DNA of 64,000 nt, taken from assembly GCA_016748015.1 (NCBI GenBank), contig JAAOMT010000602.1, forward strand, positions 124,001-188,000, given 5' to 3'. Every line of letters starts with the position of its first letter. Position 1 is the stretch's first letter. Below, one piece after another: positions 1 through 49,274 of this stretch. A program made the position numbers and the translations under genes. The notes under the pieces are model-generated. The model was not told where the DNA came from. It searched no databases and worked only from the letters and a program-made list of their open reading frames with translations. The DNA is from Geosiphon pyriformis uo1 (Eukaryota; Fungi; Glomeromycota).

Positions 1-399
1 AATCCATTTAACCTATATTGAAAAATGTACAAATCTAATTGTGTTTATTTTGGAATTACAATTATATATTAATTCAAACTCATATTAAGCCAAGTTTTGA
101 TAAAACCATTCAAAATTTTTTTTATTATATCTTAACAAAGTGTGATCCTTCCAATATCTATTCAAGTTCCTACATAAATTTAAACTATAAGTTTGCATAA
201 TGCACTTTTTACATGTAACCCAGCCATCTAGACTTATGCTAAAACTACATTAGGTTATAGCATAAAAGGCAAAAGCCCAAATTTACTTATTTTACATATT
301 AGATAATTTAAATTCTTAACTTCCAAACAAATTGACTTACTCAAAATCTAGTTTTCTTAATATTAAAGATTTAACAACTTTCAAAAAGTAACCAAATGC

Positions 400-1397
400 T
401 TAAAATTAATATTATTTATATTAAAAAACTTTTTTATAACAAAAACTCCTTATTATCTATGTTATTACCAATAGAAAAACTCTTAAAATCTTTTGCAAAA
501 AAAGCTGAGTTTTTATTTTATTATTAAGTTTATTTCTAATAAACAGCAAAAATTTAACCAAAATTACCAAAAAGCCAATAGGCCTAATAATAGATTTAAC
601 CAAATTAAAAAAATTCTAAATTTAGGCTTTTAATAATATTAGTCTAAACTTATTATCAAATATAACTATATGAATAGCAATAAATATTAGAAAAACAATA
701 ATTTTAACATAGAATTTTAACTTAAATATAACAAAAACTTAAAAAAAGATTTTATAAAAAATTTTATAATTAAAAACAATATAATCTAAACTTTAACATT
801 TATAATAACATCAACATTTAAGAGTTTTTTACCAAATATTACTATTTTTTAAAATGCCAGTTTTAACAATAACAATAACATATTTTTATTAATAATTAAA
901 CTTAAAAGTTTAAAAGATAAAACAAATTTAATTATATATTTAAACAATTATATTACAAATCTTAAAAACAATATAACTCAATAAAAAATTAACTAATTAT
1001 CTTTTTTTAATTAATAAAAAAAGTATTTTAATATTGTTTTTCTTTATTAAAATTAACTAATAAGTAAAAATAGTTTTAAAAACTTTAAAAAGCTGAAATA
1101 ATTAATAATATATTGTTACAAATTATATAAAAACTAAAAAACAGTTTTAATATAAACTATTTTAAATTTTAGCAGTAGTATTAAATACAAAAGTAAAAAT
1201 TATTCATTCAAAAATATTTGATAATTAATAATTGCTCCAAAATACCATTAAAATAACAATATTTTTAAAAATTAAAAAAATTAAAAAAGCTTTAATTATT
1301 ATTTTATTAACTTAATTTTGGTAACTAAGTAATAAATACGTTAAAATATATTTGTTTTTAAAATTAATACTAATTCAAATTAAAAATGACAAGTATA

Positions 1398-1431
<34 letters not shown>

Positions 1432-2700
1432 AAATAAAAAAAAAGTTATTGTTTACAAAGAAAACAGAATTAAATATTATAATTAATACTAATACTATAA
1501 AATTAGTAAAAATTTTAAAAATTTTAAAAAAAGTTTATGTCTTATTTTTTACAAAAATTAAAACAGATTTTAATTTAAAAAAATTATTTTAAAAAACACT
1601 AAAAAAAATATTGAGGAACAATATTTCAAAAATATTAAGTATATTATTTTTAAAAGAGAAAAAAAGATTATTTTTAACTGTTTCTGTTTTTTTAAGCAAT
1701 TAAGTAGTAAAAAAAGATTAACAATAGAAAATAACTGCTTTTTATAAAACTTTTTACAATTATAACAATTATATTAGAATTGTTCTTAATAAATCACTTA
1801 AAATAAAACTTTAAAAAATTTATTTTTAATCAAAAACAAAAAAAGTGATAGTTGTTTTTTTGTTTTTTTCTTTAATTATAATTATAAAATACAAAAAAAT
1901 AAAAATTTTGCAATTATTTGCTATAATAAAGTATAGTTTTTCTATAGTTTAATTTAAGCATAACAAAAATAACTATAAATATAAATTATATGATTTGAAT
2001 ATTAACCAGTTATTTAAACTTATGTTAAAACAATATTAAGCTAAATTACTTAAATTTTCTATTTTATTAACAATTTATTTTTATTTTATTATAATGATTA
2101 AAAAATTTTAAATTCTTTAAAATAAGTAAATTAATATTTAATAAAAACAATTTTTTTAAATTAGTTTTATAATTATAATTTATTAAGTTTAAATTTTGAA
2201 AAATGTCTGTAAAAAAACAATTTTATTTTATAAATAAATATTAACAATAATAAAGTTAAAATATTAGTGCTTTTTATATATGTATTTGTTTTTATTAATT
2301 CAGCTTGTAGCTTTATATTAAATTTATTTAAGAAAAGTAAAATAAGTTGATAATAAACAAAAATATAGTTCATTCTACTTTTTGTAATTTATTTGTTTTT
2401 AAATACAATGACAAATTTTTGTGCATAAAAAATAACTAAAAAAAAATATATTGTTTGGTTATATAACTTACAAAACAATATTTATTATAATTTTTTATTA
2501 TAATATAGACTAATTGTTTAATATTTTTAAATTTAATAATTAAATTATATTTTTTAAAATGTTTTAAAATTAAACAGCAATTATTGTGTTTTATAGTTAA
2601 TTATAAAGTATTTATTTATAATTAAAGTAATATTTTTCTAAGCATATGCTTTATAAATACATATTTTTTCTATATGTATACTATAATATAGTTTCAAGTT
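400..2700 (-). mobile_element. Heavily mutated non-LTR (LINE-like) retrotransposon ORF1/gag relic, copy 1
   Basis: Minus strand at ~760-870 reads as a decayed zinc knuckle (K-C*-C-Y-Y-K-C-*-S-L-D-Y) and at ~545-620 as LVKSIIRPIGFLVILVKFLL. Anchors 788-860 (aaactttaacatttataataacatcaacatttaagagttttttaccaaatat) and 1840-1910 recur at 46665-46720, 47920-47995 and 63771-63850. Boundaries approximate. Confidence 0.6.
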
Positions 2701-5700
2701 TGGAACTTAAAGCTAAGTATACACTCTTCATATTCTGTGTGTACAAATAATTCTGAGTTTTTAGTATACTAATAAATACATATACATAATAATTGTATAA
2801 TAATAACCAATTAGAAATTTTTAATTGCTTGTTAAATAATCATAATATAGTATTAAATTTAATTTAAATTGATTAATTGGCTTGGTGACTAGTCATATGT
2901 AAAAAGTATATAGTTTATATTTACTATGAAATAATATTTATTTTATTATTAATTATTTTTTAAATATATATTCTTTTTAAGTAAATAAATATAGTTAGAA
3001 GTATTACTGTTATATATATAAAATTTAAAACTAATATTTTTATAATTTTTTGTATTTTTAATTATTATTAAATAAAATTTTTTTATATTAATTCAGTATT
3101 ATTACAATTAAGAAAAAAATTATTAGATAACAAATAAAATACATTTATCTAACATATTTTTTATTTACATATATGCAATATTTTTTTTATTTAACGAGTA
3201 CAGCCCAATCATTATTTAATACAATACAACATCAGAGTTTTCTAAATTAAACGCGACTTACGCACTTTCTACGCGTGACCAGCTAATAAGCAATATAAAG
3301 TTATTTATGTTTTAATATATAATGGTTTTTATAACTATATTATTTTTTGATTAACATTAAACAAGTTTTGCTTGTTTAAAATAATAAAAAATATAATAAG
3401 TAAATGGTAGTTCAAGTTTTTATATATGATTAAAATAATTAAATTATATATATTTAAATGCAAATAAATTGTAAAATTTTATTTTAAGTATAGTTTAATA
3501 TAAAATAATTTTTTTATACGGTTAATTTTTCTTTAAACTTATATTACAAAAGTTTGAATTTATTTTTCAAAATTATATATTTTTTACTTACATATTTTAT
3601 ATATTATAATTTAAAAATTGTATTAAGTAAACCTAAAATATTAGAGAAAAACATTTTTACTTGCAATTTTTAAAAAACAAAAAACAAATAGAATTTAGAA
3701 TATAGTCAATATTTTATTATAAAACTTAAAAATAATAAATTAATATTTATATTAAGTTATTTAAAAACTTAGTTAATACCAAAAAAAATCCAAAAAGCCA
3801 ACACAATAAAAAATAACTGAAAACTTATTAGAATATTATATATACCAAATAAAAACTATTACTTGATTTTAGAACTTATAAACAGTATATTTATGCAATT
3901 ATTTTAATTTTTTAACAGCTTTAATAATGATAATAATAATGATAATAATAATGATAATAAAATAAAACAGTTAATACACCAATACTTTATTTATAGAAGT
4001 TTTGAAAAGAAAATTAAAAGGAAATAAATTGCATAATTAAAACATTAAAATTAAGCAAATTAGTCAGTTATTATATTTTATAAAATAGATAATTTTTTTT
4101 GCAATAATATTGAAATTTTTTACCGCAATTATGGTTTAAAAAATTTTTAAACTTAAAACTAAAACTAATATTTAAAATATTTTTACAATTATTACCACTT
4201 TTGTGCTTGATTTTTTTTATTTTTAACATTGTATTATACAATTAAGATAGATACTTTTGTAATTTTACTTAATTTTAACATTGAATATTCCTATTTACTT
4301 GTATGCACTTTTATTTAATTAGATTGAAGTAATATATATATATAATACCTTTTTTTATTAATTATTAAGTTTATTGTAATATACTATATAGCTTTATGTA
4401 TTAAATAAATATAAAAAATATATTATTAAGAAAAGTAGATTAATATGATTATAAAAAAATTTTGTCTGCTAAAAATTACTATTAAATTAAATACAAAAAA
4501 CAGACATTTTATATTGTACAATAACAAATATTTAGAATTATATTAATATATATAAATCCGAATAATTAATATACTAATGCTAATAAAAATTCAAAATAAA
4601 AATGTATTAAATAAGTCAAATTTTATCTATTATATTTTTAAAAGATTTGTTCATAAAAATAAATATTTTAATTTAAATTTTTAATTTAAACATATTAGAA
4701 TAAAAAATTACAATTTTTTTCCTTTTTTTTTCTTTATTTGTTTTATTATTATTCTTAGTGAAAGTATTTACAAATAAATAATTATTAAATAACAACTAAT
4801 ATCTTTTATTAAATTTTCTTCGAAAAATTAACAGCTGTAATTTTTATAAAACTGATTATATCAATTAAATTGCATTTTTATTCAAATTGTTTTTTTGATT
4901 AAAAATTTTCTTGATTATTTTCATTTTATATAATATCTGTTTTTTTTGTTATTTATTAGCATATTATTCTGACCTATAATAATATATCAAATAAAATATG
5001 AATAATTAATTGTTAACAAATTTATTATATATGATAATATCAAAAAAATTTGTAATATAAATTAGTTTAAAATATTGTTAATTTAGCATATAGAGAGTCA
5101 TATGAGTGAAGATTTTAAAATCAAAATTTTGCAAATTTTAAATATTTTCATAATAAAAACTATATATTAACAACTTTTAATAAAACAGTTAAAATCATAT
5201 AAATATATATATTTAATTTAATTTCACATGTTAAAAAATCTAAATTGTTTTAAGAATGCAAAATTTAAGTAGAAATTTTATTGGCTATAATAAAGCTTTT
5301 AGGCTTTTTAACACTATATTTTGAAAAAACTTAGTGTAATCAATTAGTAATATTTATAGTGAATAAATATCGGAATAAATATCGAAATAATATAAAAGCT
5401 AATTGGCTGAAATAGAGAATTATGATCTGTTGAACAATTTAGATTCAGTTTGATAGATTTTTATGGATTTATTAAGATAAAAATTTGAAAAAATTGGTGT
5501 TTTTTTTGGACATTAATATGTCTGTTCAAATAGATCTTGTTGTATAATAATTTCTTGATGTCTGATCAAGGTTTAAATTTACTTACTGCAACATAATGTA
5601 TTATTGACTTGTTATGTGTGAAAAATGCACAGTTTATGTTTATTTTAAAAATATATGGAGATTGTAAAAGAGCTTCACTCAAGAAAATAAAAAAATAGTA

Positions 5701-6050
5701 ATTATCAAAAGAATCAATAATCGTATTGATATTTTTAAACTTATTATTATTTTTCAAATACATAATTTCCATTTTTTAAATAAATTATTATTATATTTTT
5801 AACTTAAATTATTGTACTATTCTATTTACACTATAAATTATAATATTTGACATAATTTTCGTAATATGTTATAGTTATTCAAAATTTTATCAGTTTAGTT
5901 CAATAAAATTTAAATTAAATTCATTTTTGCTTTTTACAATTATTTATTTATTCTTATTACATTTTGTTCAGTTTTAATTTTTATTTTGAAGTGTTTATGT
6001 TTGAAATTGAGAGAAGTTAACTAATATTTAAATTTAAATTTTTTTGAAAT
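2700..6050. repeat. Extremely AT-rich, C/G-depleted block of degenerate repeats (family not identified)
   Basis: Composition matches the identified TE relics. Only short, low-complexity ORFs. A small CpG-containing patch lies at ~3250-3280. Confidence 0.45.
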
Positions 6051-6299
6051 CCAAAAGCTTTTTTAGCCGAAGACTTTTCAGTTAAAAATTTAATTTTTCC
6101 CAATACATAAATTCTTACGCATTAATCTTGGTTTAAAAACCAAATCCAATTCAAGCAAGTTTTGAAATGGAGAATTTTTTCAAATTTCAATTTTTTAAAT
6201 AAATCTAAATTTTCCAATTTAATTTTCAATAGTTACGTTAAAGATCCAATAATTAAAATAAAACGAGACAAGAATCCTTTAACAAGCATGTAATTCTCA

Positions 6300-7800
6300 A
6301 GGTTTTATTGGCAAAATCTTGTTTTTGTGCTGAAGTGAAATGTTTTTTATCAGGGGAAAAATTATTTGCCAATAGCTGCTTAATCAAGCATCTCCCAATG
6401 TTTTGAAAAGCAAAAGTTATAAAGCCAAGCACTACTGTGGGTTGCTGACTTATAGACCACCATATTTTTTATATTCTTTATTGATTTTTAGGTCCAAAAT
6501 TTGATTTATATCCGAGTACTTCACATAATATAATCCAAAGAGTTGTACCTAAAAATCAATAAAGGGCATAAATCATAAATCTACGAGTCAGCAACTTACG
6601 TTAGATCATGCTTACATTTGGAGAAATGAATTTTTAGCAATTTTTTTGCGTAGAACTCACCGAATATGCTCCCAATCAATACAGTACCCCGGATACTGGG
6701 GTGAATATTGGAAATACCCGGATACATCAGTCAGCAACTTATGGTATTCTACATAGATAAACGTTTGGACCGACCCACTCCAGAAAATAAATAACTGCTT
6801 GGCAGATTGTTCACCAGCAAGCTTTTTAACTTGAGAAAAGATCATGGATTGAAAATAAATAGTTATTTCTGATCGATTTGTCAAGAATTACAAAAAAGGG
6901 TTATCCAAAGTAAAAAATTCATGATCTGAATCGCCGAATTATTACTTCTTAAAGACTCTAATTTCTTTGCATTTTTTGACAACAACTAATTTTTACCGAT
7001 ATAAGAAATCTCATCTCATCGAATATTAAAACTCACTAGTGCTTTCACATTTCTTAAAGTTTTTGAAATATCGCCGGAGGAGGAAATCATTCATTTCGTT
7101 AATCCAATTGGCTTTTAAATAGCAAACATGATATGTATATTTTCAAGATTGAATGCTCACTGATAAGGTAAACCAGACGAAAATCTAGAGCAATAATCCT
7201 CATTTTTTCTTAAAATTTAACGATCTCTAATGACCTTTTTATAAATGTCAAAAAAAGATATATCAATTTCTTCTTTATAGAACAGCTCCAGCATCATGCT
7301 GCAAGGTGATGACAAATAAATTTAAAGGGTTTGGCTCCAAAACGTTTAACGAATATTTCATTAGGTCAGCATATCTCAGGCTAAAGATCGCCCTACAGTT
7401 TGTTAGTTTCAGTCCCAGTAGGCATTATACAGGTATTTGATCCAGAGCCTTTGTAATGCTAAAGACAATTACGAAAACTCGATTAACATTCCCAATATTT
7501 AAAATTTTGTAGATACTTGCCTAGTTTGCTTTCAGGGTTAGTTTACCAAAAAAAACCGATAAAAAAAGTTTTCCTTGTAATCAAGAAAGCTTGGCCATGG
7601 CTTCTAGACTCTTTCCTTGACCTCACATTAGAGCCTAAAGTCTTCATTTCTCGTCTACGTGAAAAAGGACAAAATAATAGGAATTTTCTATTTCTCATAT
7701 TTCGATGTTTGACCCCCATTAAAAGTAGACTTCTACGAAAGGCCATTAAAAAACGAATAAAGCCATGGTCCACGTGTAGTTTTCCTGAAATTATAGAAAA
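6300..7800 (-). pseudogene. Degenerate multi-exon gene remnant, product unidentified
   Basis: Gene-like GC content with intact CpGs and minus-strand splice-like sites (e.g. GTGAGT at ~7036 and ~6660). No frame stays open. Confidence 0.3.
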
Positions 7801-9919
7801 CTCAACAGCGAATTGACTTTATTAAAATGGTTGATAGTGACGTTCTCCTACGAGTCCCTCTTCGAAAATACACGACTTGAAATACGAAATACGAAATCCG
7901 GTTGTTACTCAATGAATTCTCGGTTCGATCATCCTCAATGCTGATTTAAATTCTTTTGTCAAGAATATTCGTTCAATTCACGATGCGCCGATTTTTAAAT
8001 TTTTCTTATTCGACTCTTATCCTTTCGATCTCAAAAACAATTTTTCCTTTATAAAAAATATTTTCCATTTTTACATTTGTTTTTAGCATTTTATGAAGAT
8101 TGGTTATGAAAAAAAATTATGTTATTTAAAACTATGTTTTCCCAAAGAAATTATTTTTTGGGCGCAATTATATGCCTTTCTTGATGAAGCCAAGCAAATT
8201 TGGTTTTGCAATAAATTTTAAAAATATGAATCTTGAAATTTTTTTAAATGAAACTTATGAATCTTGTTAATGACACAAACCAAGTGGAAGCCCACTCTCT
8301 AAATTACACAAACTTTTGCAAAGAAAAGAAAATTTTTTGAGGCCACAATTGACCTCAATTTAATATTAATATTTTGTTTTTAAGTGGTGATATTTATTTT
8401 CAAACTTCTGGATGCTGGAAACTAAACCAAATTTATTGCGGTAGAGGAAAAAGCAGCAAACTCGATTATTCAAACTCTCTTTTGAGTAAGATCATTATAA
8501 CAAAAATTTGTATTTTGTAAGGTCCCAAACCAAAACCAACCTAATTCGCGAAAATCTTCAAAGCAAAATGACGGAAAGTATATTTAAAAGTAAACAATGA
8601 AGTCAAAACCTCAAAATTGGAAATAATAATTTTGAAGCAGCTGTTATAAAGAATTTAAATTGTACAACAATAACAAAATAAAAAAGCATAATTTCTTCTT
8701 ATTAGGTTTGAATTTATAAAATTCTCTTTACTAGTAAATGGTCTTGACGAAATAAAAATCATTAGTTTTAAAATTATTACTTAATGATTCGAGAATAAGA
8801 AATAATTTGTAAATATTGACTTTAAATAACACAATTAAAATAAATTGATGTTTTAGCCAGTAACTTTTAAAGTTAATTCTATAAACTTTTTATTTTAGAA
8901 ATAGATAAAAATTATTTAATTTTATGCAGTAATTAATAAATTGAAATTTTATATTAAAAATTTATATTCATAAAAAAGGATATAAAAAAATCGAAATATT
9001 TTTGTGAATATTAAGAATATAACAATATTTAAAAATTGATATAAAATTCTATTCATTTAAAAAATTTATATTTATAATTTAATTAAAAATAAACAATGAG
9101 GCATTTATTCAAAGTTTTAAAAAAATCAAATAAAAAATTAATAATTTATAAAAAATAATGATAAAATAAAATAAAATCAAAAATTCTATATTTTTTGATT
9201 ATTTGCAAATTAATTTACAATTCTTTGATTCAAATATCTAAACTAAATTTTAATAAAAACATATTTTTCAAAATTAATAACTGGGAAAATAACAAACCTT
9301 ATCGTGTACAAAGATAAAGATCGCAAGATTTTATTCTCCAATCACGTCCATCAAAATTACTGCCGGATCTCCCCTCACATTAAAAAATTACTAAAATTAA
9401 ATTGTAAAAAGTGGTATGATTATTGGCAGTCATTTACATTTAACCTTTGAGTAGAATTGAAAGAATTTATTTTTTGTAATGTTATTTCTTTCACTGTGAG
9501 ACGGATACATGTGGGTGAAAATTCAAACTTTTAGGCTCAAAGTTTGTTTAAATTTCAGCAAAAAATTAGAATATAATTATATTAGAACAAAAATATGTAA
9601 TTTTCTAAGAAATACACAAAAATTCTAAATATTATCAAGCATAACTTGAAAACCAAAAAATTTTTCTTCCTGAATTTTAATAACTAGTTTTGAATATATG
9701 AATTTTTCTAGTTTTTTATTTTATAATTTTCTTAAGAGTTTGATTAATTATATTTTTGCAAAAATTTGATTAATATTTAAATCTTGTTAGAATTTTTTAA
9801 AAAATATTTTCAAAATTTTTTTAAATAAAAAAATAAAATAAACAAAATTTAATATTTTTATTAAAAATTATTTTAATTTTTTAATTATCTTTTCAATTAC
9901 ATTATTATTTTAATTACAC

Positions 9920-9920
<1 letters not shown>

Positions 9921-9996
<76 letters not shown>
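9921..9996. repeat. (ATT)n microsatellite
   Basis: About 25 perfect ATT units. Confidence 0.95.
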
Positions 9997-9998
<2 letters not shown>

Positions 9999-11048
9999 TA
10001 TTTTATTTATTTTATTTATTTTTCAGTTAATATCTATTTAATTAATTACTCTTTTAAATAATATTTATTATATTTACTTATGTAAATTTATAAATTGTAA
10101 TGCTTAGTATTACTTTTTATATGAAATAAAAAATTTTATAAAACAAAATTCGTATTAAAAATATACTATCTGAGATCTAACTAAAAACAAGATAAAACAA
10201 AATTAAGAAATAAAAATAAAGATTAATAATTAATATTAATTAAACTTAAAATTTTGTTAATAAAAACGAAGTTATATACATAATAATTAAAAAAGTATAC
10301 GAAATTAATATAGTAATTTTATTAATATAAAATTAATATATTGTTACAGTTGAAAATTTTATAAAATTAATTCTAAAAAATGCCAACTAAAAACATAGAA
10401 TTATGGTAGTTGTAATATTTTTTATTTGAATTATATTTGTTCAAATTGGAAAAAAATAATAGTTTTATATACAACAACTTTTTTTGTTAATTGTTTAGTT
10501 TTTTGTTACACTATACTTAAATAAATGTTTAAAATGTTAATAAATATAATAATAAGAAATCAATTATTATAATTAATTAAATTTTACTAATCTCTAAATT
10601 ACACATCATATAAAGCTTTATTTTCAAAATTGCTCATTGCGACAAATATGGCAATTACCAAAAAAATAGCTCTTAAAACTGCAACTACTAAAAAAATCAA
10701 AAAGTTCCAACATGAGTACAAAAATGAAAATTAAATAGAACGTTGCAGACAAGAAATTCAGTTTTTAATTGGAAAAAAGCTTTAAAATATTACCAATACA
10801 CCAAAAATATTAAAATAACAGTAGTAAAACAACACGTGGAAATTTTGAATGAAATTATCCAAAATAGATAAAGCTATCAATAAAAAATCATAGGAAGTAA
10901 TTATTGATGATGTATTATTCTAAAAAATATAAATTTTATAATTATTTCGAATAAATTTTGGTAATTAGATATTCATGATAGTTGGAATCAATTTTTTTAG
11001 AATAAGATGATTTTAAAGAATGAATCGAACGAAAATAAATTTACATAA

Positions 11049-13307
11049 TTAATCGTCATCTAAGCTTGTTTCACTATCGTTATTACAATTTTCTTCCCTA
11101 TCACTATCATCTACATATGGGGCAACAGGGACTGCAAAAATTTTATAGTATTAGTTAAATTTAAATCCATAAGTTAAGATAAAACCATATTTGTTAATGT
11201 GTTACCATATTGACGTTTATCTAGGGGCACATAATTTTCCGGGTAAGTTGATTCATCGGAGTATGCCACAATAGAGTTTCTATCAGCTGGTACACCAGAA
11301 ATTTCATCACGAAGTTGCAAAGTTTCATGAAATAGCTGATACGCATTAAAAAGTACAAAATCACTCGGTTCTGCCCTCAATACAAGTCCAAGGTCCGGAA
11401 ATTGGATTTCACCACCTTTGAAGCGACCCAGCACCCAACAACCACACATTCCAAACTTAACATCATTGATATCCCGGTGAACATTGACACTACCAGAACG
11501 CTCTTTAGATTCTTGATTATCCTGAGCCGCCTGCTTAGAATTTGGATCACGTTTTTTCAAATTAAAATGAAAAACTTTCCATGGTGATGAGTGCCATTGG
11601 ATTTCAGGCGGAACTTGTAACATGGCGTATTTTTCATAAACATTCGGATACCAATGGTTGAAGAGGGCACCACCAATCGTATTCAACGCTTGTACTAAAG
11701 AATATATTGGGTTCGCGAGAAACTCGAGGTAACTTTTTGTCACTTTTGACCGGGTCAAACCAATGGAGAGAAACGGTAGGCGAGAAGATTTGGGCCAAAT
11801 TCCTACTGATGCTATTAATGTTCCTTTCACTCTTTTTGGCTTAAGGTGATGCATTTCAAAAGCTCTGCAAGTTATTTCAGCAGCTTGGTACGCATCAAGA
11901 TTCATAGCCTTCGTCATGTACCGTTTGAATAAGTGACCTAAAGTTACGAATTTATTATTAACAAAATGACCAAAGATGACATCTCGCTCCTGATCATCAC
12001 CAATAACACGAAATTTCTCCCTGGAGAAAGTTGGATGTGGATGACGGGAATGTTTTTCAATCTCCTCAATCAAGTTGCAAGGTGCTGCAAGTACAACTAA
12101 TTTACAAAAAAAAGGCATTAATTCACACGTGAAATCAAAAATATTTTTAAATACATAAATTCGTTTTTAAAAACTCGCTTGGTGGTTTGATCCATTCATC
12201 TTTTGCTTCATCCCCTATTTTATAATTAATAATTTCTGAAACACCCACATGTCCACTTTCAATTGTTGGCCATATCTCTTCGGGAACTTCGGATATGTGA
12301 ATTGCTCTTTCAAACTGACCCATTGCTAGTATTTCTCCTTTTGATAAATAGCGACAATTTTCACCGATAGGATGGGGTGGATCATAAATGTACACTGTTT
12401 TGCCGATATTTATTGCAGGGGCAGAGTCATCAATACTAAATCAGTAGAAAATCTTTAGCCATATTCTAATAGCGGTTGAAAGATACAAGTCTTTCAAAAA
12501 TATTTACGTAGGTAAATCACCGAACCAATCCATCCGATCTTCCTCTTTTAATATATTTACAAAGTCACGAGTGTTGGTTTTGACATTGGATTTTTTATTT
12601 GCATTGGTAGAACGTTTGGTATTTATGGCTGTAAGTTTGAGTCGTTTTGTGGGAGCTTCGGTGAGGCTACTTTCAACGGTGATTTCCTTGTTATTCATTG
12701 TAGGCTTGGAGCTTTCGTTGATAGCTATACTTTGAGTAACTTTTGGGGCAAATTCATCATTGCCTTTTATTGTCCTCTTGATGGCAGGTCTGCCTCTCTT
12801 CCCTTTATTAGACTGGAGGACAGGTTCATCATTGACCTTTGCCTTTCTATCGATGGGAGGTCTGCCTCTCTTCACTCTAGTAGACTGGAGGACAGGTTCA
12901 TCATTGCCCTTTGCCTTTCTATTGATAGGAGGTCTGCCTCTCTTCCCAGACTTATTTTTGATAGCCAGGAGGACAGATTCATGATAGTCTTTTGCCATAC
13001 TATTGGTGGGAGGTCTACTTCTCTTCGCAGGTTTACCTTCAGTAACCTGGAGGACAAATTTATCATCGCCCTTTGCCGTGCTATTGGTGGAACTCTTCGT
13101 AGTTTTACTTTTAGTAGCTTGTAGATCAAGTTCATTATTTATTTTTGTTACGTTCCTGGTGATATGTCTGTCTCTGTTGGCAGTTTCTCTTTTACTAGCT
13201 TCGGCAATAGGTTCAAGGTTGACTGTTGACAGGTTCTTTTTTGGAGGTCTGCCTCTTTTTTTTTTAACTTGAACTGTGGGCTCAGTATTAACATTTGGGA
13301 TTTTCAT
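11049..13307 (-). CDS. AT-hook-repeat protein with C-terminal TET/JBP-type 2OG-Fe(II) dioxygenase domain (~684 aa, 4 exons)
   Basis: Exons 13307-12508, 12435-12155, 12096-11206 and 11131-11049, with GT-AG introns of 72/58/74 nt. Phases match and the total is 2055 nt. N-terminus has KRGRPP/KRGRPA AT-hooks. C-terminus has HxD (VNVHRDIND), G-x-F-x-GG-x-I-x-FPDLG...PSDFVLF, distal His (LFHET) and 2OG-binding Arg (RNSIVAY), followed by an acidic tail (DDSDREENCNNDSETSLDDD). Confidence 0.85.
12740..13095 (-). repeat. Coding tandem repeat (72-81 bp units), each unit carrying an AT-hook
   Basis: aggtctgcctctcttc-like core at 12786, 12858, 12930 and 13011. Protein unit is KRGRPPI(N/D)RKAK(G/V)NDEPVLQS... 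Confidence 0.9.
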
Positions 13308-13311
13308 TATT

Positions 13312-14126
13312 ATGGATAGATCCCGTCATGTAGCTGTCAATCGGCGATGGTGCAGAGCATTAATACCCCATTTTGTGGGAAAATCCATTCACCAATGAAA
13401 ATAATTGTTTATTTTTGCCCTCGAAAAAAAACGCCAAGTCTCAAGTTTTATTTCATTAATTTTTCCCTATCCAGCTTTTATTCGATCCCTTGATGTGGCA
13501 TATTTGAAAGAAATTCTAAATTTCTGGTGCTGGGTGAGGAAGCCATTGCAACAGGTTGACATCGAAAAATTTCATGAAAAAGCCAGAATTACTCACTTCG
13601 AAATCCAGTTTCTTTCAGAAGTTTATAATTGGAAAATCTTGGTTCGAATTTAAGGAGGATATTCTTGACTGGCTACGTACTGATGTGAAAACATGTTGCT
13701 TAAATTATAGCATGTGGTATTGAGAGGAATTGGATGTTGATAAATTTGGTAGTTTTTTTTAAAAAAAGATTATCTAAAAAAATTTTTATTTTCTTTTACG
13801 TTAGGTGAGCCTGGAAATTGACTTTGGTCCCTGGAATCCTCGAAATTTGTCAATTGAGAAGGTTTAAACTAAGTTGGGTCAGACTTTACGAAAGTGAACT
13901 TCTTGAAGGATTATCATTTAGTGCTGCCACCCTATCGACTTTTGAATTTTACCAAATCGATTTCTCTCATGCCAAGCCTTTACGTCTTTTACCAAGATTG
14001 AAAAGCATAAGATTTCTAAGCTGTATCAATTTGGAAGTAAAACATTTAAATCCAATTCCTCACGATCTTACCAAAATTTCACCTGAGTGGATATTTGCGG
14101 AATGTGATAGAGCTTTTGATTTTTAA
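13312..14126 (+). pseudogene. 5'-truncated, frameshifted F-box/LRR pseudogene, paralog of 17151-18359
   Basis: AVNRRWCRALIP/ILWENPF and FPYPAFIRSLD match VLVNSRWCAAAIPHLWSHPF and FDYPHFAQDLD. Same intron position (aatttg|gt...ttag|xxxLEID). Exon 2 LLEGLSFSAATLSTFEF..LPRLKSIRFLSCINL matches ILHGLYTNASTLTEIQF..LPNLKRLTFIECQNL. Several frameshifts. Confidence 0.8.
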
Positions 14127-17150: not shown

Positions 17151-18359
17151 ATGGCAGCAGCAGCATCATTACCAGCTGAAATTTACGACCAAATCTTCCA
17201 AAACTTTCTTCCAACTCACACTCATGGTCCATTCTCAACACAAAACCTCTACTCTAGCGTACTGGTAAATAGTCGCTGGTGTGCGGCAGCGATTCCACAC
17301 CTATGGAGCCACCCGTTTAGCGCTCGTCATTCCATAAAACAACGAAGCAAAATTATCGATGTATACGTTTCTTTTCTTTCCAGGTCTGAAGGTCGTGATA
17401 TTTTTTCGTTTCCTAAAAAACTTACCTTGATGGTTCGCCAAATTTGTTCGACGAAAACCAAACCACCACTTTTCGATTATCCTCATTTCGCCCAAGATTT
17501 GGATTTGGACGGGTTTTTTGAAATTATATTATGCTGGTGTTATTTGAAATGTCGTCCTGATCGTGCTTGGAAGTTGGTTATTGCAATGATGAAGTTGTTC
17601 TATACCCATAAAGCGACGTTTGAGAGGGTGACCGGGTCCTTACATTTAGATAATTCCAGAGAATTTTTAAAGATTTTTATTGATACACCTGGGCTCTCAG
17701 AATGGATTTCATCGGTTCGAGAGTGTCGATTGGTATGCGAGGAAAGGATGAACGGAGTGGAAAATCAACCATCCCTTGCTGATTTATCTTGTAATTTGGT
17801 AAGCCATTTTTCGAGAGAGAGTCGAATATTGGAACTGATTTATTTTCAATATTGCATAAAGTTTTAAAAATATTATTATTTTGCCTTATTTTAGACCTGC
17901 CTAGAAATAGACATGTCAATCACAAACACGCAAGATCCATCTGCGAATGCCGAAATCATAACACGAACTTTGAAATACACCAAAGGACTTAAAACAATCA
18001 AGATAAAAGGCCAACCAGGCAACATAAATTCTATTTTACACGGTCTTTACACAAATGCTTCAACATTGACCGAGATCCAATTTATTAAGACAAACTTTGA
18101 TTTTGATGGTCCTTTACCTCATCTCAAAGAATTACCCAATTTGAAGCGATTGACGTTTATTGAGTGTCAGAATTTGACTGTTCAGCTTGTGGAACCTTTG
18201 TTTCTGGTAAATGAGCAGGATGAAGTGGATCATGAGGCACCTCGTGTTATGTTAGTTGGGTGTCATTTCGATGGAGAAAGGGGGAAAAGTGATTCCGGTT
18301 TCGTTTCTTGGCATGACAGTCTTACCAATAGTTGGAGTGTGGAAAAGGAACAAATTTAG
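17151..18359 (+). CDS. F-box/LRR (RNI-like) protein, 2 exons, ~370 aa
   Basis: Exons 17151-17798 and 17895-18359 join in frame. F-box motif LPAEIYDQIF..LYSSVLVNSRWCAAAIPHLWSHPF, then PLFDYPHF and LRR-like LPNLKRLTFIECQNL. Confidence 0.88.
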
Positions 18360-22244: not shown

Positions 22245-23102
22245 ATGTTTCAAAAAGTTTTATTTTGCTTGATTTCTCTTTGCGTCTATCTTATATGTGT
22301 GGCCGTCATTTCAGGGGATCAAAACCTTCCACCAATTAGTTTCAAATTAATTCCGGTTGAAGACCAAGATCCCTTACTAACAGATAAGGATGTGGTTAAG
22401 GTCAGCCTTGAAGATTTTCTCGAAAATTCTTCCAACATCCTTGGTCTTTCAAAAGGTCAAGTATCACAAGAATATATTCGAGAGGAGGTTGAGAAGTTAT
22501 TCAAAAGTATTAAAGGTCAGGAAAAAACGCAACAAACAATTCAAACAAAACCTCAAATTCTCCTTCCACAACAATGGCATCATAAAATTGCACATTTTCC
22601 ATCTCGCAAGAAATTTAATATGACGATTGCTCGTAAGGAACCTTGCTCTCATGGAAGGGTTTATCGATTCGGTTTAACTCATTTGGATGGAGAAAATGAC
22701 CCTTTAGATGTCGACTTTATTGTTCCTTTTAGTCAATATAAAAAGTATGGAAAAGATAAGGGAGTTCTCAAAAATGAAACTCAATACGAGCTGTTGAATT
22801 TTTTATTTGATCAATTGGGAGCGAGAAGATTTGTCAGTAATGATCAATTAGGTCATAAACTATTTAACCTTTTGTACAAAGCTTCAGAGGAAATCAAATC
22901 CCTTCTTTCAAGTAAGCAATCTAGCTTAATTTACGAATTCGCCCTCTTACCTTCAAAAGATCGATATACTATCAAGATCAACCATAGAAGTGATTCGTAT
23001 AAACATTGGGGCAATGTCTATGACATTTTTTTGAAAAGAAAAACCCAAGCACAGGGATACGAATTAGAATTTATGATTGTTAACCCTTTTCCTCATGTAT
23101 AA
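22245..23102 (+). CDS. Secreted protein with internally duplicated unknown domain (285 aa); paralog of 31863-32687
   Basis: Hydrophobic N-terminal signal peptide, intronless ORF. Two copies of a (L/F)PS..(Y/F).I.I.....G(R/N)VY......F.(I)V.PF motif. Confidence 0.85.
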   Translation: MFQKVLFCLISLCVYLICVAVISGDQNLPPISFKLIPVEDQDPLLTDKDVVKVSLEDFLENSSNILGLSKGQVSQEYIREEVEKLFKSIKGQEKTQQTIQTKPQILLPQQWHHKIAHFPSRKKFNMTIARKEPCSHGRVYRFGLTHLDGENDPLDVDFIVPFSQYKKYGKDKGVLKNETQYELLNFLFDQLGARRFVSNDQLGHKLFNLLYKASEEIKSLLSSKQSSLIYEFALLPSKDRYTIKINHRSDSYKHWGNVYDIFLKRKTQAQGYELEFMIVNPFPHV

Positions 23103-31862: not shown

Positions 31863-32687
31863 ATGGCTCGTAGCAATATTTTTCTATTGACTCTCTTCAC
31901 CGCCATCTTGGCTGTTCTCTTCACGTCTACCCGAGCTTTGCCTCACTATACCAATCTTTCAAATTTATTTTCTGGGAAAAAGCCATCCGCCAAAGTATTT
32001 CTTGAAGCTCTCTCTGTTCACTTGGGCGATAATTCAGCTTCAATCAATGTTAATAATCACGAGAGCCTTTGGGAAAAATTTATCGACAGCTTGAATGATT
32101 CCCCAGTTGATATTCTAGTTGAAGATAAAAAGGTAAAGAGAGAATACGAAATTGAAGCGCTGCCATCCAAAAAACACTACAAAATCACTGTTGAGCGTCT
32201 AGAGGATAAAGAATATGGTCGAGCCTACCAACTCACCACTGAACACCTTAATAGTGATCATAAACCGTGGTCCTATGTAATTGTTGTCCCGTTTGAAAAA
32301 GATGGGGGCGAAGCTGCCGAATTTTTCGATCTTCTTTCCGATGAACAAAAAGAATCCAAGGAAAATGTCGACTTTGATTTTCCAGAATTGACCAAAGAAA
32401 TTGAGAATAAATTTTTTGAAGCCATTCAAGAATTGGACTTGTTTGAGATTGAAACGGTTTCCAACGAGAAACGAAGCCTCTTTGGTGGGGGCCATCACCA
32501 TAAAAAAGAATTCAGATTTGCCGTTCTGCCTGCTTACAAAATCTATAAGCTTATTGTTCAACGGCTGCCACCCAATATACATGGGCGTGTCTTCAAGCTC
32601 AATGTAATTCCCGAGGATGAAGAAGAAAAAGAGAGAGAATATACATTTATTGTTCCTTTCAACCAAAAGGATTGTGTTAGAGATTAA
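31863..32687 (+). CDS. Secreted protein with internally duplicated unknown domain (274 aa); paralog of 22245-23102
   Basis: Signal peptide MARSNIFLLTLFTAILAVLFTSTRA|LP. Repeats LPSKKHYKITVER..YGRAYQL..YVIVVPF and LPAYKIYKLIVQR..HGRVFKL..YTFIVPF. KR dibasic sites. Confidence 0.88.
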   Translation: MARSNIFLLTLFTAILAVLFTSTRALPHYTNLSNLFSGKKPSAKVFLEALSVHLGDNSASINVNNHESLWEKFIDSLNDSPVDILVEDKKVKREYEIEALPSKKHYKITVERLEDKEYGRAYQLTTEHLNSDHKPWSYVIVVPFEKDGGEAAEFFDLLSDEQKESKENVDFDFPELTKEIENKFFEAIQELDLFEIETVSNEKRSLFGGGHHHKKEFRFAVLPAYKIYKLIVQRLPPNIHGRVFKLNVIPEDEEEKEREYTFIVPFNQKDCVRD

Positions 32688-33266: not shown

Positions 33267-34712
33267 CTATAACGGTCTTCTTGTAAAATTCTTCAAACGA
33301 AATCTACCGAATTGTGTGAGCGATGCTGCCATATACACTTCAGCAGGCAATTCAGAAAAGCTTTGTAGAGCCAAGACATTATTTATTGAAAAGTGACACA
33401 CCCTGGCCTTCATATTAAGATAAAATGTAATCTCGTCACCCTTGGCGAATTCTTTATAGGTTTCGCTACTTATTTTTCCATTGTTGAATGTGGTTCTTCC
33501 TGACTCTCCTATCATCCAACAATTTTTTTGAAAATCCAATAAAGTTTCAAAATCCAAATTTTCAAGTCCACAAACACCAACGGAACCCCAAAAGCATTTT
33601 TCTTCGATTAAAACATTCCATTCATAGAGATAGTCTCCCGAAAAGAAATTAATTGTACGGATAGATTTATGGGCAGATATGCTGAGGTTTTTAGCTGTTA
33701 CAACCTTATTTGACTCTGTTATGGAAAGGCCAGCTCCACACGCTGTAGTATCCCAGATAAAATTCAAAGTTTCGTGAGGCTCACCACGTTGAAATTTGGG
33801 GTTACTCTCATCAAGCAAATGATATTGATAAACTTTCAGAAGAAAATTCACAGGAAGAACGTTCAGTGGTTGAATTATCACACCCAAAGCTTTTAAAGGT
33901 ATCATTCGAAAGTCAATCAAATAAATCAAAGGAAGAATTATTTTGGCTACTTTGGTTGCATTTTGTTGCGTCCGAGATTCATTTTGATAGTCAATTTGTT
34001 GCATTTTGGGAAGACTTTTTAAAAAATCTATGGATGAATCAAACGTAGGTAAAACCTTTGAAAATGCAGATAAAGTTTCTTCCGATATTTGATTTGCTGC
34101 CCACAAGATTATATAGCGTAGAATATCATACTCATTCGTAGCAAAGTATTGGTCGGTATTCAAAGTTGTAGTGAGAATTTTTTTTAACATCTCGAGATTC
34201 ATTTTATTGAATGGGAACGAATCAAGGGGTTTAGCGACAAGATGATTGCTAAGTAATGTATACAGCTGATTATCTTCCATTGTTCCCATTTTTGTGATTG
34301 CATTTGACAAAAAATCCCCGCTGGAGTCATTTTTCAAGCATTCCTCGACAAATGTAATAATAAGAGCTTCTAAATCTGGTAAAAGAAAATACTTGGCAGC
34401 ATGATAACCATCAATTGCAGTAGACGCTGTAATTGAACCTTTATCCAAACCACCCGTGTAAATAAATTCGAGGACAAGTTTCATACCCGCAGTAGAAATT
34501 TCAGGAAAAGTGATGGAATTGCCAAAAATCTCGTGCATTCCATTGAAAAGAAGTCTATCAAAAACTTCAGAACGAGCCGCCAAATGAATCCTAGATGCAT
34601 ACAGAAGTTCGCCCTCATTATCAACATCAGAGCATTTAATTTTAAGGTCACTATAACGAGAGTTGTTAACGAGAAATTTCAGGTCGACGACGAGCGAACT
34701 ACCACGGGTCAT
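33267..34712 (-). CDS. BTB/POZ + helical (BACK-like) + SPRY/ConA-like domain protein, 481 aa
   Basis: DLKFLVNNSRYSDLKIKC, LAARSEVFDRLLFNGM, VLEFIYTG (BTB). C-terminal FIWD..CG.GL, YEWNVLIE, GDEITFYLNM, LPAEVYMAASL (SPRY). Confidence 0.92.
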   Translation of the reverse strand: MTRGSSLVVDLKFLVNNSRYSDLKIKCSDVDNEGELLYASRIHLAARSEVFDRLLFNGMHEIFGNSITFPEISTAGMKLVLEFIYTGGLDKGSITASTAIDGYHAAKYFLLPDLEALIITFVEECLKNDSSGDFLSNAITKMGTMEDNQLYTLLSNHLVAKPLDSFPFNKMNLEMLKKILTTTLNTDQYFATNEYDILRYIILWAANQISEETLSAFSKVLPTFDSSIDFLKSLPKMQQIDYQNESRTQQNATKVAKIILPLIYLIDFRMIPLKALGVIIQPLNVLPVNFLLKVYQYHLLDESNPKFQRGEPHETLNFIWDTTACGAGLSITESNKVVTAKNLSISAHKSIRTINFFSGDYLYEWNVLIEEKCFWGSVGVCGLENLDFETLLDFQKNCWMIGESGRTTFNNGKISSETYKEFAKGDEITFYLNMKARVCHFSINNVLALQSFSELPAEVYMAASLTQFGRFRLKNFTRRPL

Positions 34713-37498: not shown

Positions 37499-38873
37499 AT
37501 GGGGATAGCATTAAAAAGGCCAGAAATTGTTTCCATTGGATCAATTACAGCCAATTATTGCCCTACTCTTACCCCCGAAACTAGATATCGATTTTTTAAA
37601 AATTGTGTTCGATGTAAACAGCCAAATTCTTCCTATGGTTGGTGTCAATCTTGTGAATCTGCCAATTTTCGTAAAAATTTTTCTTCATGGACCAGTGGCA
37701 ACAATGAACTCGATCAATTAATTCGAAAATCACAAAGGAAAGCTATTACACCCAATGATTGTTTAGAATGGATACCTTTCAAACATCTTGAAAAAATTGA
37801 ATTGATTGCCTTTGGTGGATTTGGTGAGGTATCAAGAGCAATATGGGTTGAAGGACCAAGATTTAAATGGGATGAAAGATTGAAGCAAAGAATCAGAATC
37901 GGGCCGATAGAAGTTGCATTAAAGGAATTTTATAACTCAGAATATGTCAATGAAGAATTTCTTGATGATGTATGTCTTTGTTATTTTTGTTAACTGATTA
38001 TTTAATGAAATATCTATATTTAAATGACACGCTCAGAGTAAAAAATTTTCCCTTTAGTGGTATCTTGAGGATTCTAAACTATTTCAGAGAAGTAATATTC
38101 GGGGACATACTTCATCATGCTATGGAATATCCCAGAACCCAAATACCAAAAATTTCATTCTTGTAATGGAGGCTGGCTTGCCGTTCCATGAAAATTGCGT
38201 GAAAATAGCTCATGAAATTAGCTGGATGAAGAAACTTGAAATTCTGTATGAAATCGTGATTGCGTTATCAGCCCTTCATAGCGCAGGATTAATTCACGGC
38301 AATCTACACGAAGGAAACATACTTTTTAATCTAAAACATCCCAGTTATTTGTATTTAAATGATATTGGCTGTTTCTATCCTGTCAATGAATCTCAAAACG
38401 CAGGGCAAAATTTATTATACGGCGTTTTGCCATATCTTGCACCAGAACTTTTAATAGGAGGAACTAGATCTGCTGCAACCGATATTTACAGTTTTGGGAT
38501 GATTATGTATAGCGTAGCAACCGGAAAAAGGCCATTTTTCAATTGTACCCACGATGAAAAATTAGCCTCGAAGATTTGTCGCGGCACACGTCCTAAAGTT
38601 TCGAAGGATATTCCCGAGAGTTACGCGATGCTAATGAAACGTTGCCTTGATGAGGATTACAGAATTCGTCAAAAGGCATCAATAATCGCCGATATTATTG
38701 AAGATTGGATGGCACAATTAAAATTTGCAGTAGATGATAGGATTTCTAAAGAATTTAAAGAAGCTGAAGAAATTCGAAAAAAAAGGTTGAAATCAGGGGT
38801 GAAAATAGAAATTAAATCACATTCTGAAGCGGTTTACATTAGTAGACTTCTCGATTTTCCTAAGTTGAGATAA
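37499..38873 (+). CDS. Tyrosine-kinase-like (TKL) protein kinase, probable pseudokinase, 2 exons, ~428 aa
   Basis: Exons 37499-37969 and 38058-38873 join in frame. CxxC/WCxxC, WTSGNNELD, EWIPF, GGFGEV, VALK, CYGISQNP, IHGNLHEGNIL, DIG, YGVLPYLAPE, DIYSFG. Confidence 0.92.
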
Positions 38874-45775: not shown

Positions 45776-46099
45776 ATATAGAAAAGACGTCGCTTTGTCG
45801 ACCAAAGTGCGGTAACGAGAGTAAAAGTCAAGGATAGGACGCGTGAATGATATTTACACAGACGTTAGTGGCGTCATCATCCATTTGATATGCAAAGAAT
45901 TTTACAAAACCAAACAAGCAAATATAATATTTTTTATTAATCTGATTTTTTTTTGTACTATTTATTGTTTTAAGTGGATTATTAAAAAATTGTCTGTTTT
46001 AAATGCATTTTTGAAAATTTTAATAAACAATCACAATAATTTTTTTAATGTAAAAAAATCCTCAATAAAACCAAAATAATAATTAATATAAATATTACT

Positions 46100-48500
46100 A
46101 TTATTTTTTTATTTACAAAAAGATAAATTTAAATATAATATATTTTATAGATTGTAATAATAATATTATTAAATGTTAACAAGTATAATCCAAATTATAG
46201 CCTTTAATAAAAGCAGCTCATATATTTTTATATGTAACCAGTAATCCGAATAAAACTAAATTATATTAAATATTACAAACAAATTTTTAGTATTTATCTT
46301 ATTAATAACAGAATTTAGATTTATACTACTTTTAATAAACTTACTTAATCTTTTTTTATTATATTTTATGTTATTATTTAAACAAATATTATCCAGTTTA
46401 TCCAATATTTTTATGTAAAAAAATTTAAGATCTCAACTTAATTTTTAATTTAAATCCAACAAAAAACAATTTTATTTTTATTTTTATTATTAAAATAATT
46501 TGTTTTTGACAAAACCAAAAAGCTAAACAACCAAAATACCAAAAAATTTGATTATTTAATTTATTAATTAATTAATTTAACAACTTAACTTTTAAAATAG
46601 TCAACTTAATATTAAAGTTATCATTAATAATATATAATATAAATTTTAATATTTTGGAAAAATAGTAAAATTTAAGAGTTTTTTTACTAAATATATTATT
46701 TTGCAAAGTATTAATTTTAATAATAGCTTTATTAAAAAGCTTTTTGCTTTAATATAATAATAAATTTTTAATAATATTCAAATTAAACTATTATAAAATA
46801 AAACAAGTTTAATCATTAATCTAAAGACATTATAACCAAAAAAATTAAATTAACTTGGTTTTATATGTATTATAAAAAAGGATAATTTTTTTTTAATTAA
46901 ACAATAATATACTGTCAAAAACCAGTTTAATACTAGATATTTTAAAAAAACATTATAAAAATAAGATCAAATTGAATTAATAAGTCCAATCTTAATAATA
47001 ATATTTAAAAAAACTTAAGATATAAACTTTATACAAAAAAACCTAACTTTATTTTTAAAATCCAATTTTATATTAATAAAATTATATACAAATTAAAATA
47101 TATTTTTAATAAAAGTTATTTTAATTTTAATAATATATTTAATAAGTTATTGTATTATCAATTATTAGAAAAATAGTATTTTTATTTATATTATTATTGC
47201 TTAAAATTAACAAATTTTTATACAAATTAATCCTAATTTTATCTAGATTTTTAATTTAAATTTCGAAAAAAGTATTAACAGATTTAATTACTTATAATAT
47301 TAAATAAGTTAATTTTAATATCTAAAACTTTGAAAATTTTATTTTAATATAACGTTTTTATTACAAAGATTAAAGTAAAACTTATTATTAAAAAACAATA
47401 ATAGTAAAAGCAAAAATAAAATTCAATATTACAATAACTTTAGCAATTTTAAAAGTAATAAAAAAATTAACAAGTTTAGTAATAGTATTTAATAAAACCT
47501 AATATTATTCTTGATAAACAACTTAATACCAATACATTTTTAATATAAATTATTTTTATTTAAGCAAAAATACCAAGAATTAAAGTAAAAATCATTTATT
47601 CAGCAAATTTTTAATAATTGGTAATTATTTTCATTGGACAATACAATTAAATATTATTTAAAAACAGAGTTAACAAATATATTATTATTATTGTTTAAAA
47701 CAAAAAAGAGCAATCAAAATAAAATTAAGTATTGTAATTAATATAAATAACATAAAACTGGTAAAAATATTAAAAAAAAAAAAACAGATCACAAACCATT
47801 AAAAGTGTTTTGAAAAACTTTTTAGTTTAAAAATATTTAAGCAAAATATTTTTAAAAAATGCTGTTTAACTGTTTTTATAACTAAAATAACTTTTAAATA
47901 ATAATACTTTTATTAATTACAGAAAAAATAGTAATTGTTTTTTTACTTTTTGTTTTAATTGTAATTATAAAAATATAAAAAAAAGAGATTTTCTTATATA
48001 ATTAAAAATAAACTAATTTATAATATTAAAAAAAAACAAAAAGTACATAATTTGTAAAAAATACCAGATTTAAATTTTGATTGTTAAAGTTTATAAAGCT
48101 ATTATTACTAAATAACATTTTTTTAATTTTTACAAAATAATTATATAAGAATAAATATTTTATTAGTATTTAAAGAAAATATTGTAAAAATTAATTTTTT
48201 AGAAATTTCTGTCAAAAAGTTATTTGAAACCAATCAATTATTTTATTTTTATATGCAAATAATGTTTAAATATAAAAAATATCAAAAATATCAAAAATAT
48301 CAAAAAAAATATTAAAACAACTAAAATATTGATTAATACTATTACATAAAAAATATAATACATAAGTTATTATAATCTTAAATTCAAATTAAGATAAAGT
48401 TATTGTTAAAAAAAGTAAAGTTATAATTAAGTTATATAATAATATAAAGTCTATTTATTCAACAATATTCAAGCCATTAATTTTAAAGCTTAAACAATTA
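46100..48500 (-). mobile_element. Heavily mutated LINE-like ORF1 relic, copy 2
   Basis: 46665-46830 and 47920-47995 align by eye with 800-960 and 1840-1910. Confidence 0.6.
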
Positions 48501-49274
48501 TTGACTGTGAAAAGTTTTTTGCCAATGATAAATAATTTTTTTTTTTTAATAAAGCAAAAATTTGTTTTGTGACTGTTATTTTTACTATTAAAAGATCATG
48601 TAATTATAAATTGGCATAATATGTCTTTGTTTTTATATTGAAAAATACTCTAGATATGAAAATTTAAAAAATAGTATGAAATAAGATTTCTTTAATTTTA
48701 CCCAAGAAAAGAATAATTATTTTTAAAAATATTTCCCATTTTTTATTATTAAAAGATATCAGAAAAAAAACCTGCATTTTTAATTGCAGTCGCGTGTGAG
48801 TACAGCATGTTTGTTTATGTTGTGTCAACTTATTATTATACAGTTTTTTACATTGTCTCTATTACTCTGTCTGCCTTTCTTAAAAGAGCCCTTTCCAAAA
48901 AAAGGTTCCGAAATTCTTTGAATAAACCCGGAAATAGTTAATTTCTAGAAATTTTATGCTTAGAAATCAGTCAGTCTTTAAATGGATTAAAGAATTATTA
49001 GAGATCACACAACAATTACGATACGTTACTATATTTTTTAACATTCTCATTTCAAAAATAGCTTAGTTTCTTACTAATATGTAAATCATGAGAAGAATAC
49101 CATTTTCTCTATTGTTGCTAATAAGTCATTAATAGATTTTGTACTCTTAATTAATAAGCCTTTTGTTAATTAAATAAATTTAAAACTTTAAAAATTATAA
49201 ACAAATTATGAAAGATAGAAAAGGAAATATTTATATTGGAGTTTTATTGTTGCCGAGCTTTTATTCTTCAGATT

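Follow-up and report, generated by a model that had tools for sequence, protein, structure and literature searches.

A single-copy TET/JBP dioxygenase gene with an AT-hook array in Geosiphon pyriformis, a candidate host 5-methylcytosine oxidase of Archaeosporales

The window analysed here, a stretch of 64,000 nt of Geosiphon pyriformis DNA whose source thus bears out the Glomeromycotina setting of the original prediction, carries on its minus strand a gene whose four exons (Table 1) join into 2055 nt, i.e. 684 amino acids plus a stop codon, with zero in-frame stops according to scripted frame arithmetic. In this model all three introns are bounded by GT..AG, and their GC content lies below that of the exons (0.20-0.28 versus 0.36-0.41). 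A phmmer search with exon 3 led back to the same gene in public data, where it is annotated as a hypothetical protein of 676 aa (KAG9289913.1, G9A89_010219, Geosiphon pyriformis). This model joins the same four exons, the single difference being a GC donor at 12178, which lies 24 nt upstream of the GT donor at 12154. The original prediction of a spliced protein of ~684 residues is thereby sustained apart from one splice donor. For the latter the annotated GC donor is favoured, since both Ambispora orthologues described below possess a single phase-1 intron that aligns with Geosiphon intron 2, and position 12178 matches it better than 12154. Full-length comparisons were made with KAG9289913.1, whose residue numbering is used throughout, and the exons were searched separately.

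Table 1. Features of the TET/JBP gene in window coordinates, and loci of the separate multicopy TET family of Geosiphon
Feature	Position	Strand	Remarks
Exon 1	12508..13307	-	aa 1-266; aligns with KAG9289913.1 1-268; basic low-complexity arm bearing the AT-hook array
AT-hook 1 core RGRP	13245..13256	-	context KKKRGRPPKK; also NLS-like
Tandem repeat carrying hooks 2-5	12746..13123	-	five 72-81-nt units, 63-78% identity to reference unit
Hook 2 RSRP	13011-13022	-	in tandem repeat
Hooks 3-5 RGRP	12930-12941, 12858-12869, 12786-12797	-	in tandem repeat
Intron 1	12436..12507	-	72 nt, GT..AG, GC 0.28; same junction in KAG9289913.1
Exon 2	12155..12435	-	~93 aa; end at 12179 if the annotated GC donor is used; small domain or linker
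Intron 2	12097..12154	-	phase 1; 58 nt (GT donor 12154) or 82 nt (GC donor 12178)
Exon 3	11206..12096	-	entire TET/JBP catalytic domain, 296 aa
HxD iron ligands His559, Asp561, and Asp564	11462..11479	-	HMM alignment
Distal iron ligand His609 (= NgTet1 H279)	11327..11329	-	HMM alignment
Last core strand: Arg625, Val629, Tyr631, Asp633	11255..11281	-	HMM alignment
Intron 3	11132..11205	-	74 nt, GT..AG, GC 0.20
Exon 4	11049..11131	-	27-aa acidic tail and stop
Multicopy TET loci	contigs C727, C692, C551, C657, C506, C332, C553, C541, C653, C666		L003-L010, L020-L034

The splicing pattern is predicted. Three other acceptor positions tried for intron 1 each break the frame, and leaving this intron unspliced leads to an immediate stop in the read-through from the hook exon, while exon 2 has no stop in the required frame as compared with 10 and 4 in the other two. 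No contig covered the gene in one Geosiphon RNA run (46 Mb of contigs), a small run from which silence of the gene does not follow. For exon 2 no homologue was detected in Pfam, the ESM Atlas, the PDB or the Geosiphon genome itself, and its predicted fold is poor (pLDDT 39). Likewise, the rest of the genome yielded neither a further homologue of exons 1-2 nor a donor of exon 1, and PDB searches with single sequences returned noise only.

Exon 1 contains five hook cores, four RGRP and one RSRP (starting at 13256, 13022, 12941, 12869 and 12797), in agreement with the four canonical and one degenerate AT-hook originally called. The array displays the repeated core and basic flanks by which AT-hooks are recognised, and the first 245 residues carry a net charge of +34; the Pfam AT_hook profile (PF02178) stays below threshold (13.8 versus 17.4 bits; E 0.054 for hook 1). 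The RGRPs of exon 1 are the sole ones across all six frames of the window, and none of 100,000 shuffles of the exon reached three. This statistic treats the hooks as more independent than they are, since four of them lie in the 72-81-nt units of a tandem repeat and hook 1 is related to that unit. Core codons of hooks 2-5 are near-identical, and the repeat copies show pN ~ pS over few sites. The cores are kept in four of the five repeat units and in the isolated hook 1, with flanks diverged to 63-78%. Binding of the hooks to AT-rich minor grooves is predicted from these motifs. Hence, the array itself is confirmed, whereas its proposed role as the defining targeting system is weakened, as both orthologues are hookless and the hooks are tandem-repeat copies without a selection signal.

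The catalytic domain matched a single Pfam family, Tet_JBP (PF12851; E 2e-6, 27.6 bits), and in the ESM Atlas exon 3 was placed at 0.97 to Tet_JBP clusters, the nearest of which are mostly from Basidiomycota. Neither exon 3 nor its Ambispora counterpart (29.6 bits) reaches the gathering score of 34.9 bits; this sub-threshold score marks a divergent clade, the profile and fold tests placing the enzyme in TET/JBP. A profile built from 35 exon-3 relatives recovered NgTet1 (E 1e-14) and CcTet (3.5e-11), with all else above 0.1. In Foldseek searches with an AlphaFold (AF2) model of exon 3 (pLDDT 76, pTM 0.79), the first 26 matches were all TET/JBP structures (NgTet1, CcTet, CMD1, TET2; E 1e-10 to 3e-6), with CcTet as the best (E 1.4e-10) and the first AlkB only afterwards. 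VIA Z-scores were 17.5 for NgTet1 and 17.2 for both TET2 and CcTet (224-232 aligned residues, rmsd 3.2-3.9), whereas AlkB reached 14.0 and the highest-scoring prolyl hydroxylase 12.8. Identity as an AlkB or prolyl hydroxylase is rejected on the Foldseek order and the VIA scores. Because the top structural matches are TET/JBP enzymes, the outcome named beforehand as speaking against the original prediction, a best match to a non-nucleic-acid 2OG oxygenase, did not arise, and with profile, predicted fold and motif tests in concurrence we regard membership in the TET/JBP family as practically certain.

The 2OG-Fe(II) site is complete as first described (HxD..H..R at 11479/11473/11329/11281). His559, Asp561 and His609 are intact, as is Arg625, the 2OG-binding arginine equivalent to NgTet1 R289, and all four are invariant in both Ambispora orthologues. 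The predicted activity is oxidation of a 5-methylpyrimidine in nucleic acid.

The base pocket was assigned through HMM sequence alignments to NgTet1 and CcTet, without a superposed DNA complex. In these, Asp564 corresponds to NgTet1 D234, TET2 N1387 and CcTet G331, the stacking Tyr631 to NgTet1 F295, and Val629 to V293, while Asp633 atypically occupies the position of NgTet1 H297, TET2 H1904 and CcTet R393; in addition, Gly554 replaces NgTet1 Arg224 and His529 replaces Ala212. Asp633 and Gly554 are invariant in Geosiphon, both Ambispora orthologues and a relic from a soil metagenome (L048), although Asp633 is not unique, the same residue being present in 7 of the 36 aligned proteins. The signature of 5mC-oxidising enzymes of the NgTet1/TET2 type is therefore present in part: Asp564 is the putative reader of cytosine N4, as is Asp234 in NgTet1 (PMC4678852), and Tyr631 the aromatic stacker, but Asp633 stands where a His or Arg donor to N3/O2 is expected at the H297/H1904 position. 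An acceptor here would suit thymine N3-H. We rate 5mC as about twice as likely a substrate as thymine. Activity of CcTet on 6mA requires Asp337, and an Asp at the Gly331 position is reported to clash with 6mA (PMC11040006). As Asp564 and Cys570 take the places of Gly331 and Asp337, 6mA is an unlikely substrate; its inclusion among the candidate marks in the original prediction is not borne out, and we reject it as the main substrate.

DNA and protein searches both identify the gene as single-copy in the Geosiphon genome. Relatives were found by phmmer over representative proteins, a word-index protein search having missed all of them. The nearest come from Ambispora gerdemannii (a protein of 342 aa) and A. 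leptoticha (its counterpart); they show 38% identity over 261 aa and are reciprocal best to the Geosiphon protein within the set tested. Comparison of the two Ambispora genes yields dN 0.048, dS 0.40 and dN/dS 0.12; the orthologues are under purifying selection. Both end upstream of the Geosiphon intron 3 point and have a short basic N-terminus in place of the hook arm, with RGRP absent from every frame of the loci examined, which take in 10 kb of upstream sequence for A. gerdemannii but no more than 636 nt for A. leptoticha. Hooks are seen in Geosiphon only, and in light of their repeat origin a gain in Geosiphon is more likely than a loss in Ambispora. The A. leptoticha annotation CAG8452662.1 (L011:637-1705) wrongly treats the stretch with HxD as an intron and removes it; in the genomic sequence, ORF 824-1705 runs through without interruption and has the triad intact. 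The Ambispora loci are syntenic with each other and lie among housekeeping genes, an arrangement not conserved in Geosiphon, where the Ambispora neighbours are on contig C645 without a TET trace. Since this cluster (a GPN GTPase and a 654-aa gene, G000:C645:690000-697500) is kept there without TET, the gene has moved in one lineage.

In quick maximum-likelihood trees, the Geosiphon gene and the two Ambispora genes with an intact triad group together with SH-aLRT 89-90 in three of four, the fourth leaving the group unresolved. No orthologue from Rhizophagus, Gigaspora or Paraglomus was present among the 34 phmmer matches (20 identified), a survey of matches and not genome by genome. The same tree group also takes in L048 and two paralogues with intact ORFs that lack HxD..H, one from Geosiphon (KAG9286673.1, G000:C656:150399-151447, L002) and one from A. 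gerdemannii (CAG8468931.1, L013:10001-11463). These two fall together on long branches, which suggests a sister gene that has long been without catalytic activity and perhaps reads modified bases. The AT-rich L048 TET (GC 0.26) is the closest relative outside Archaeosporales. It lies tail-to-tail (L048:110-619 and 719-1117 for the pair) with a fragment ending KGRP..CxxC..H..C that by eye resembles the C-terminus of a MULE transposase, with no Pfam match, and it provides a lead towards a transposon origin of the clade.

A second TET/JBP family, apart from this group in the trees, occupies about a dozen loci in Geosiphon (Table 1), most with stops, frameshifts or gaps. Metagenome members (L049-L061) have intact ORFs of ~520 aa, score above the Pfam cut-off and carry His at the H297 position; identity between the Geosiphon and metagenome copies is 42-64%. 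This second family appears to be mobile and to belong to Glomeromycotina-like fungi; it lies outside the coverage of the survey by Kojima 2025. An origin of the hooked gene from it was considered and rejected on account of 27% identity and the separate clade.

As originally noted, no transposase accompanies the gene: none was recognised by eye among window ORFs of at least 110 aa or by Pfam in the flanking ORFs. The flanks show no inverted repeat beyond chance AT matches, so that none of the hallmarks of a transposon-borne TET (transposase, terminal inverted repeats, multiple copies) was found. Upstream, a plus-strand neighbour (13443-14000) is transcribed and spliced in the RNA run, with a 100-nt GT..AG intron near 13554-13653; the distance between its transcript start and the TET ATG is 136 nt, in a head-to-head arrangement, and the two genes probably share a promoter. 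Elsewhere in the window are an F-box/LRR gene (17151-18359, weak Pfam matches) and, by eye, a BTB-domain protein (33267-34712), a protein kinase (37499-38873), an HMG-box protein (51090-52097) and two related signal-peptide proteins (22245-23102 and 31863-32687).

On its 3' side the gene adjoins an AT block with GC ~0.15. Blocks of this kind span 1-11000, 46001-49000 and 58001-64000 of the window, and positions 4730-5090 are repetitive, at least 39 further copies having 71-78% identity to them. Three of the four stretches measured in the blocks have a CpG O/E of 0.43-0.64 and a GpC excess of ~2, stretch 8501-11000 not being CpG-depleted, as compared with 0.87-0.88 in the gene islands (GC ~0.3). 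The AT-rich repeat blocks invoked in the original prediction are thus real. The Geosiphon genome also gives 10 C5-methyltransferase matches over the cut-off, some broken, and together with the CpG depletion these fit past or present 5mC on repeats. We know of no Geosiphon methylome. In the related Rhizophagus irregularis, 32-50% of cytosines are reported as methylated, with low 6mA (PMC8298701).

Based on these observations, we tentatively favour, at somewhat less than an even chance for the statement as a whole, a host 5mC-oxidising TET/JBP of Archaeosporales that in Geosiphon is tethered by AT-hooks with an AT-rich bias. The single-copy host gene would encode a nuclear Fe(II)/2-oxoglutarate dioxygenase that hydroxylates the methyl group of a 5-methylpyrimidine after flipping the base out of duplex DNA. 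In this way 5mC would become 5hmC and might be oxidised further, the enzyme thereby erasing or modifying fungal cytosine methylation. In Geosiphon only, the added N-terminal arm, which is basic and bears five AT-hooks derived by tandem duplication, would hold the enzyme on DNA through multivalent contacts, biased to AT-rich minor grooves such as those of the CpG-depleted relics or their borders. A point against the 5mC reading is that the relics, at GC 0.15, offer few cytosines. The first rival reading is a JBP-like thymine hydroxylase, AT-hooks suiting a thymine substrate more than cytosine: the enzyme would write 5-hydroxymethyluracil, with the hooks aimed at T-rich relics, as a silencing mark comparable to dinoflagellate 5hmU on transposons. 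The Asp633 shared by the three Archaeosporales enzymes and L048 is a suitable hydrogen-bond acceptor, the H1904Q change in TET2 makes T oxidation five times higher and JBP1 also has Asp at the D234 position (PMC11804724), and oxidation of T is known for TET/JBPs of dinoflagellates and phages (PMC11572971, PMC13229309). However, in NgTet1 an Asp of the D234 type speaks for cytosine N4 (PMC4678852), the pocket is a poor guide to the substrate according to PMC11804724, the residue equivalences stem from HMM alignment, Asp633 is not a unique residue, and no hmU data for Glomeromycotina, nor any description of an oxidised base in the Geosiphon lineage, were found in the literature searched. We consider thymine hydroxylation unlikely, if far from negligible; its stricter form, a fungal JBP-like writer guided by the hooks to hypermutated AT-rich repeats and depositing 5-hydroxymethyluracil as a heterochromatin mark, appears distinctly improbable.

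The hooks might also do no more than raise DNA affinity in general or bring the protein into the nucleus, or they might be a near-neutral expansion of a repeat, on an active TET without targeting of repeat blocks. The orthologues would work with a short basic N-terminus only, the tandem copies of hooks 2-5 lack a selection signal, hook 1 reads as a classical NLS, and Geosiphon DNA is AT-rich nearly everywhere, including the gene islands. On the other hand, the cores survive where the flanks have diverged, and in HMGA-type proteins the binding of tandem hooks to AT tracts is cooperative, so that we hold this reading to be rather unlikely. A catalytically dead or non-DNA enzyme (acting on RNA m5C, or as a reader or scaffold), or a CcTet-like 6mA demethylase, would be in line with the altered base pocket, with the HxD-less paralogues produced by the clade and, for 6mA, with its occurrence at ApT in arbuscular mycorrhizal fungi (PMC8298701), which would suit AT-hooks. 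The invariance of the metal and 2OG ligands across three orthologues and the replacement of both CcTet determinants leave this group of alternatives with a small probability. Finally, the locus could hold two adjacent genes, a 267-aa AT-hook protein and a hookless TET starting at the only internal Met of exon 2 (12323) and of roughly Ambispora size: exon 1 is a closed ORF with its stop just past the donor, and no RNA links it to exon 2. Yet the 72-nt AT-rich gap has GT..AG ends and preserves the phase, the part of exon 2 that precedes the Met is open and resembles coding sequence, only ~180 nt would be left for a terminator and a promoter, and the public annotation independently joins both parts, which makes this arrangement highly improbable.

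A host 5mC-oxidising enzyme, the reading we favour, would be of interest in several respects. The TET/JBPs known from fungi are carried by transposons of Dikarya in many copies, to which a conserved single-copy host TET in Archaeosporales forms a contrast, and such a gene would be a candidate for active erasure of 5mC in mycorrhizal-type fungi, which have the highest reported fungal levels of this mark. Being small, the exon-3 domain lends itself to expression, and its unusual Asp pocket would allow a direct test of the choice between 5mC and thymine in TET/JBPs. The hooks, as a one-species addition, are of limited general importance, yet offer a natural plus/minus contrast with Ambispora. A 2026 review names no TET among early-diverging fungal demethylases (PMC13297926), and the Kojima survey covers Pucciniomycetes, Agaricomycetes and Pezizomycetes only, with Glomeromycota unmentioned (PMC12730594).

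Among characterised enzymes, NgTet1 (PDB 4LT5/5CG8) shares the minimal TET fold (Z 17.5, 224 aligned, rmsd 3.9), the HxD..H..R site, the D234-type Asp, V293 and an F295-type aromatic residue. The Geosiphon enzyme differs at ~12% identity by Asp for His297, Gly for Arg224 and His for Ala212, by an 18-aa basic insert before the HxD strand and by a 350-aa N-terminal arm with AT-hooks. With CcTet and the AG-type Kyakuja/Zisupton TETs (PMC11040006, PMC12730594) it has the fungal TET/JBP fold in common (Z 17.2), but it belongs to another fungal phylum, lacks equivalents of Gly331, Asp337 and Arg393, and is single-copy as opposed to dozens, with no transposase or terminal repeats seen. The transposon-borne PU/AG/PE-type fungal TET/JBPs (PMC12730594) are of the same enzyme family, whereas the Geosiphon gene is single-copy, intron-bearing and located among host genes; it is neither of CcTet type nor transposon-borne. 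Kinetoplastid JBP1/2 and dinoflagellate CryTJ1 (PMC11804724, PMC11572971) are members of the same superfamily, JBP1 with the shared Asp at the D234 position, but, compared by description and not by sequence, the Geosiphon enzyme is without their J-binding or SNF2 domain. No paper describing AT-hooks on a TET/JBP was found in the literature covered, which did not include the surveys of Iyer et al. 2009, 2013 and 2014. Precedents for the design, a DNA-binding module joined to a 2OG-Fe DNA dioxygenase, are nevertheless available in CXXC-TET1/3 and in the AT-hook fusions of the AlkBH3/AlkBH5 clade, chromatin-binding modules on TET/JBPs being a known trend (PMC4738411); from the latter fusions the Geosiphon enzyme is set apart by a catalytic domain that is TET/JBP and not AlkB (Z 17 versus 14).
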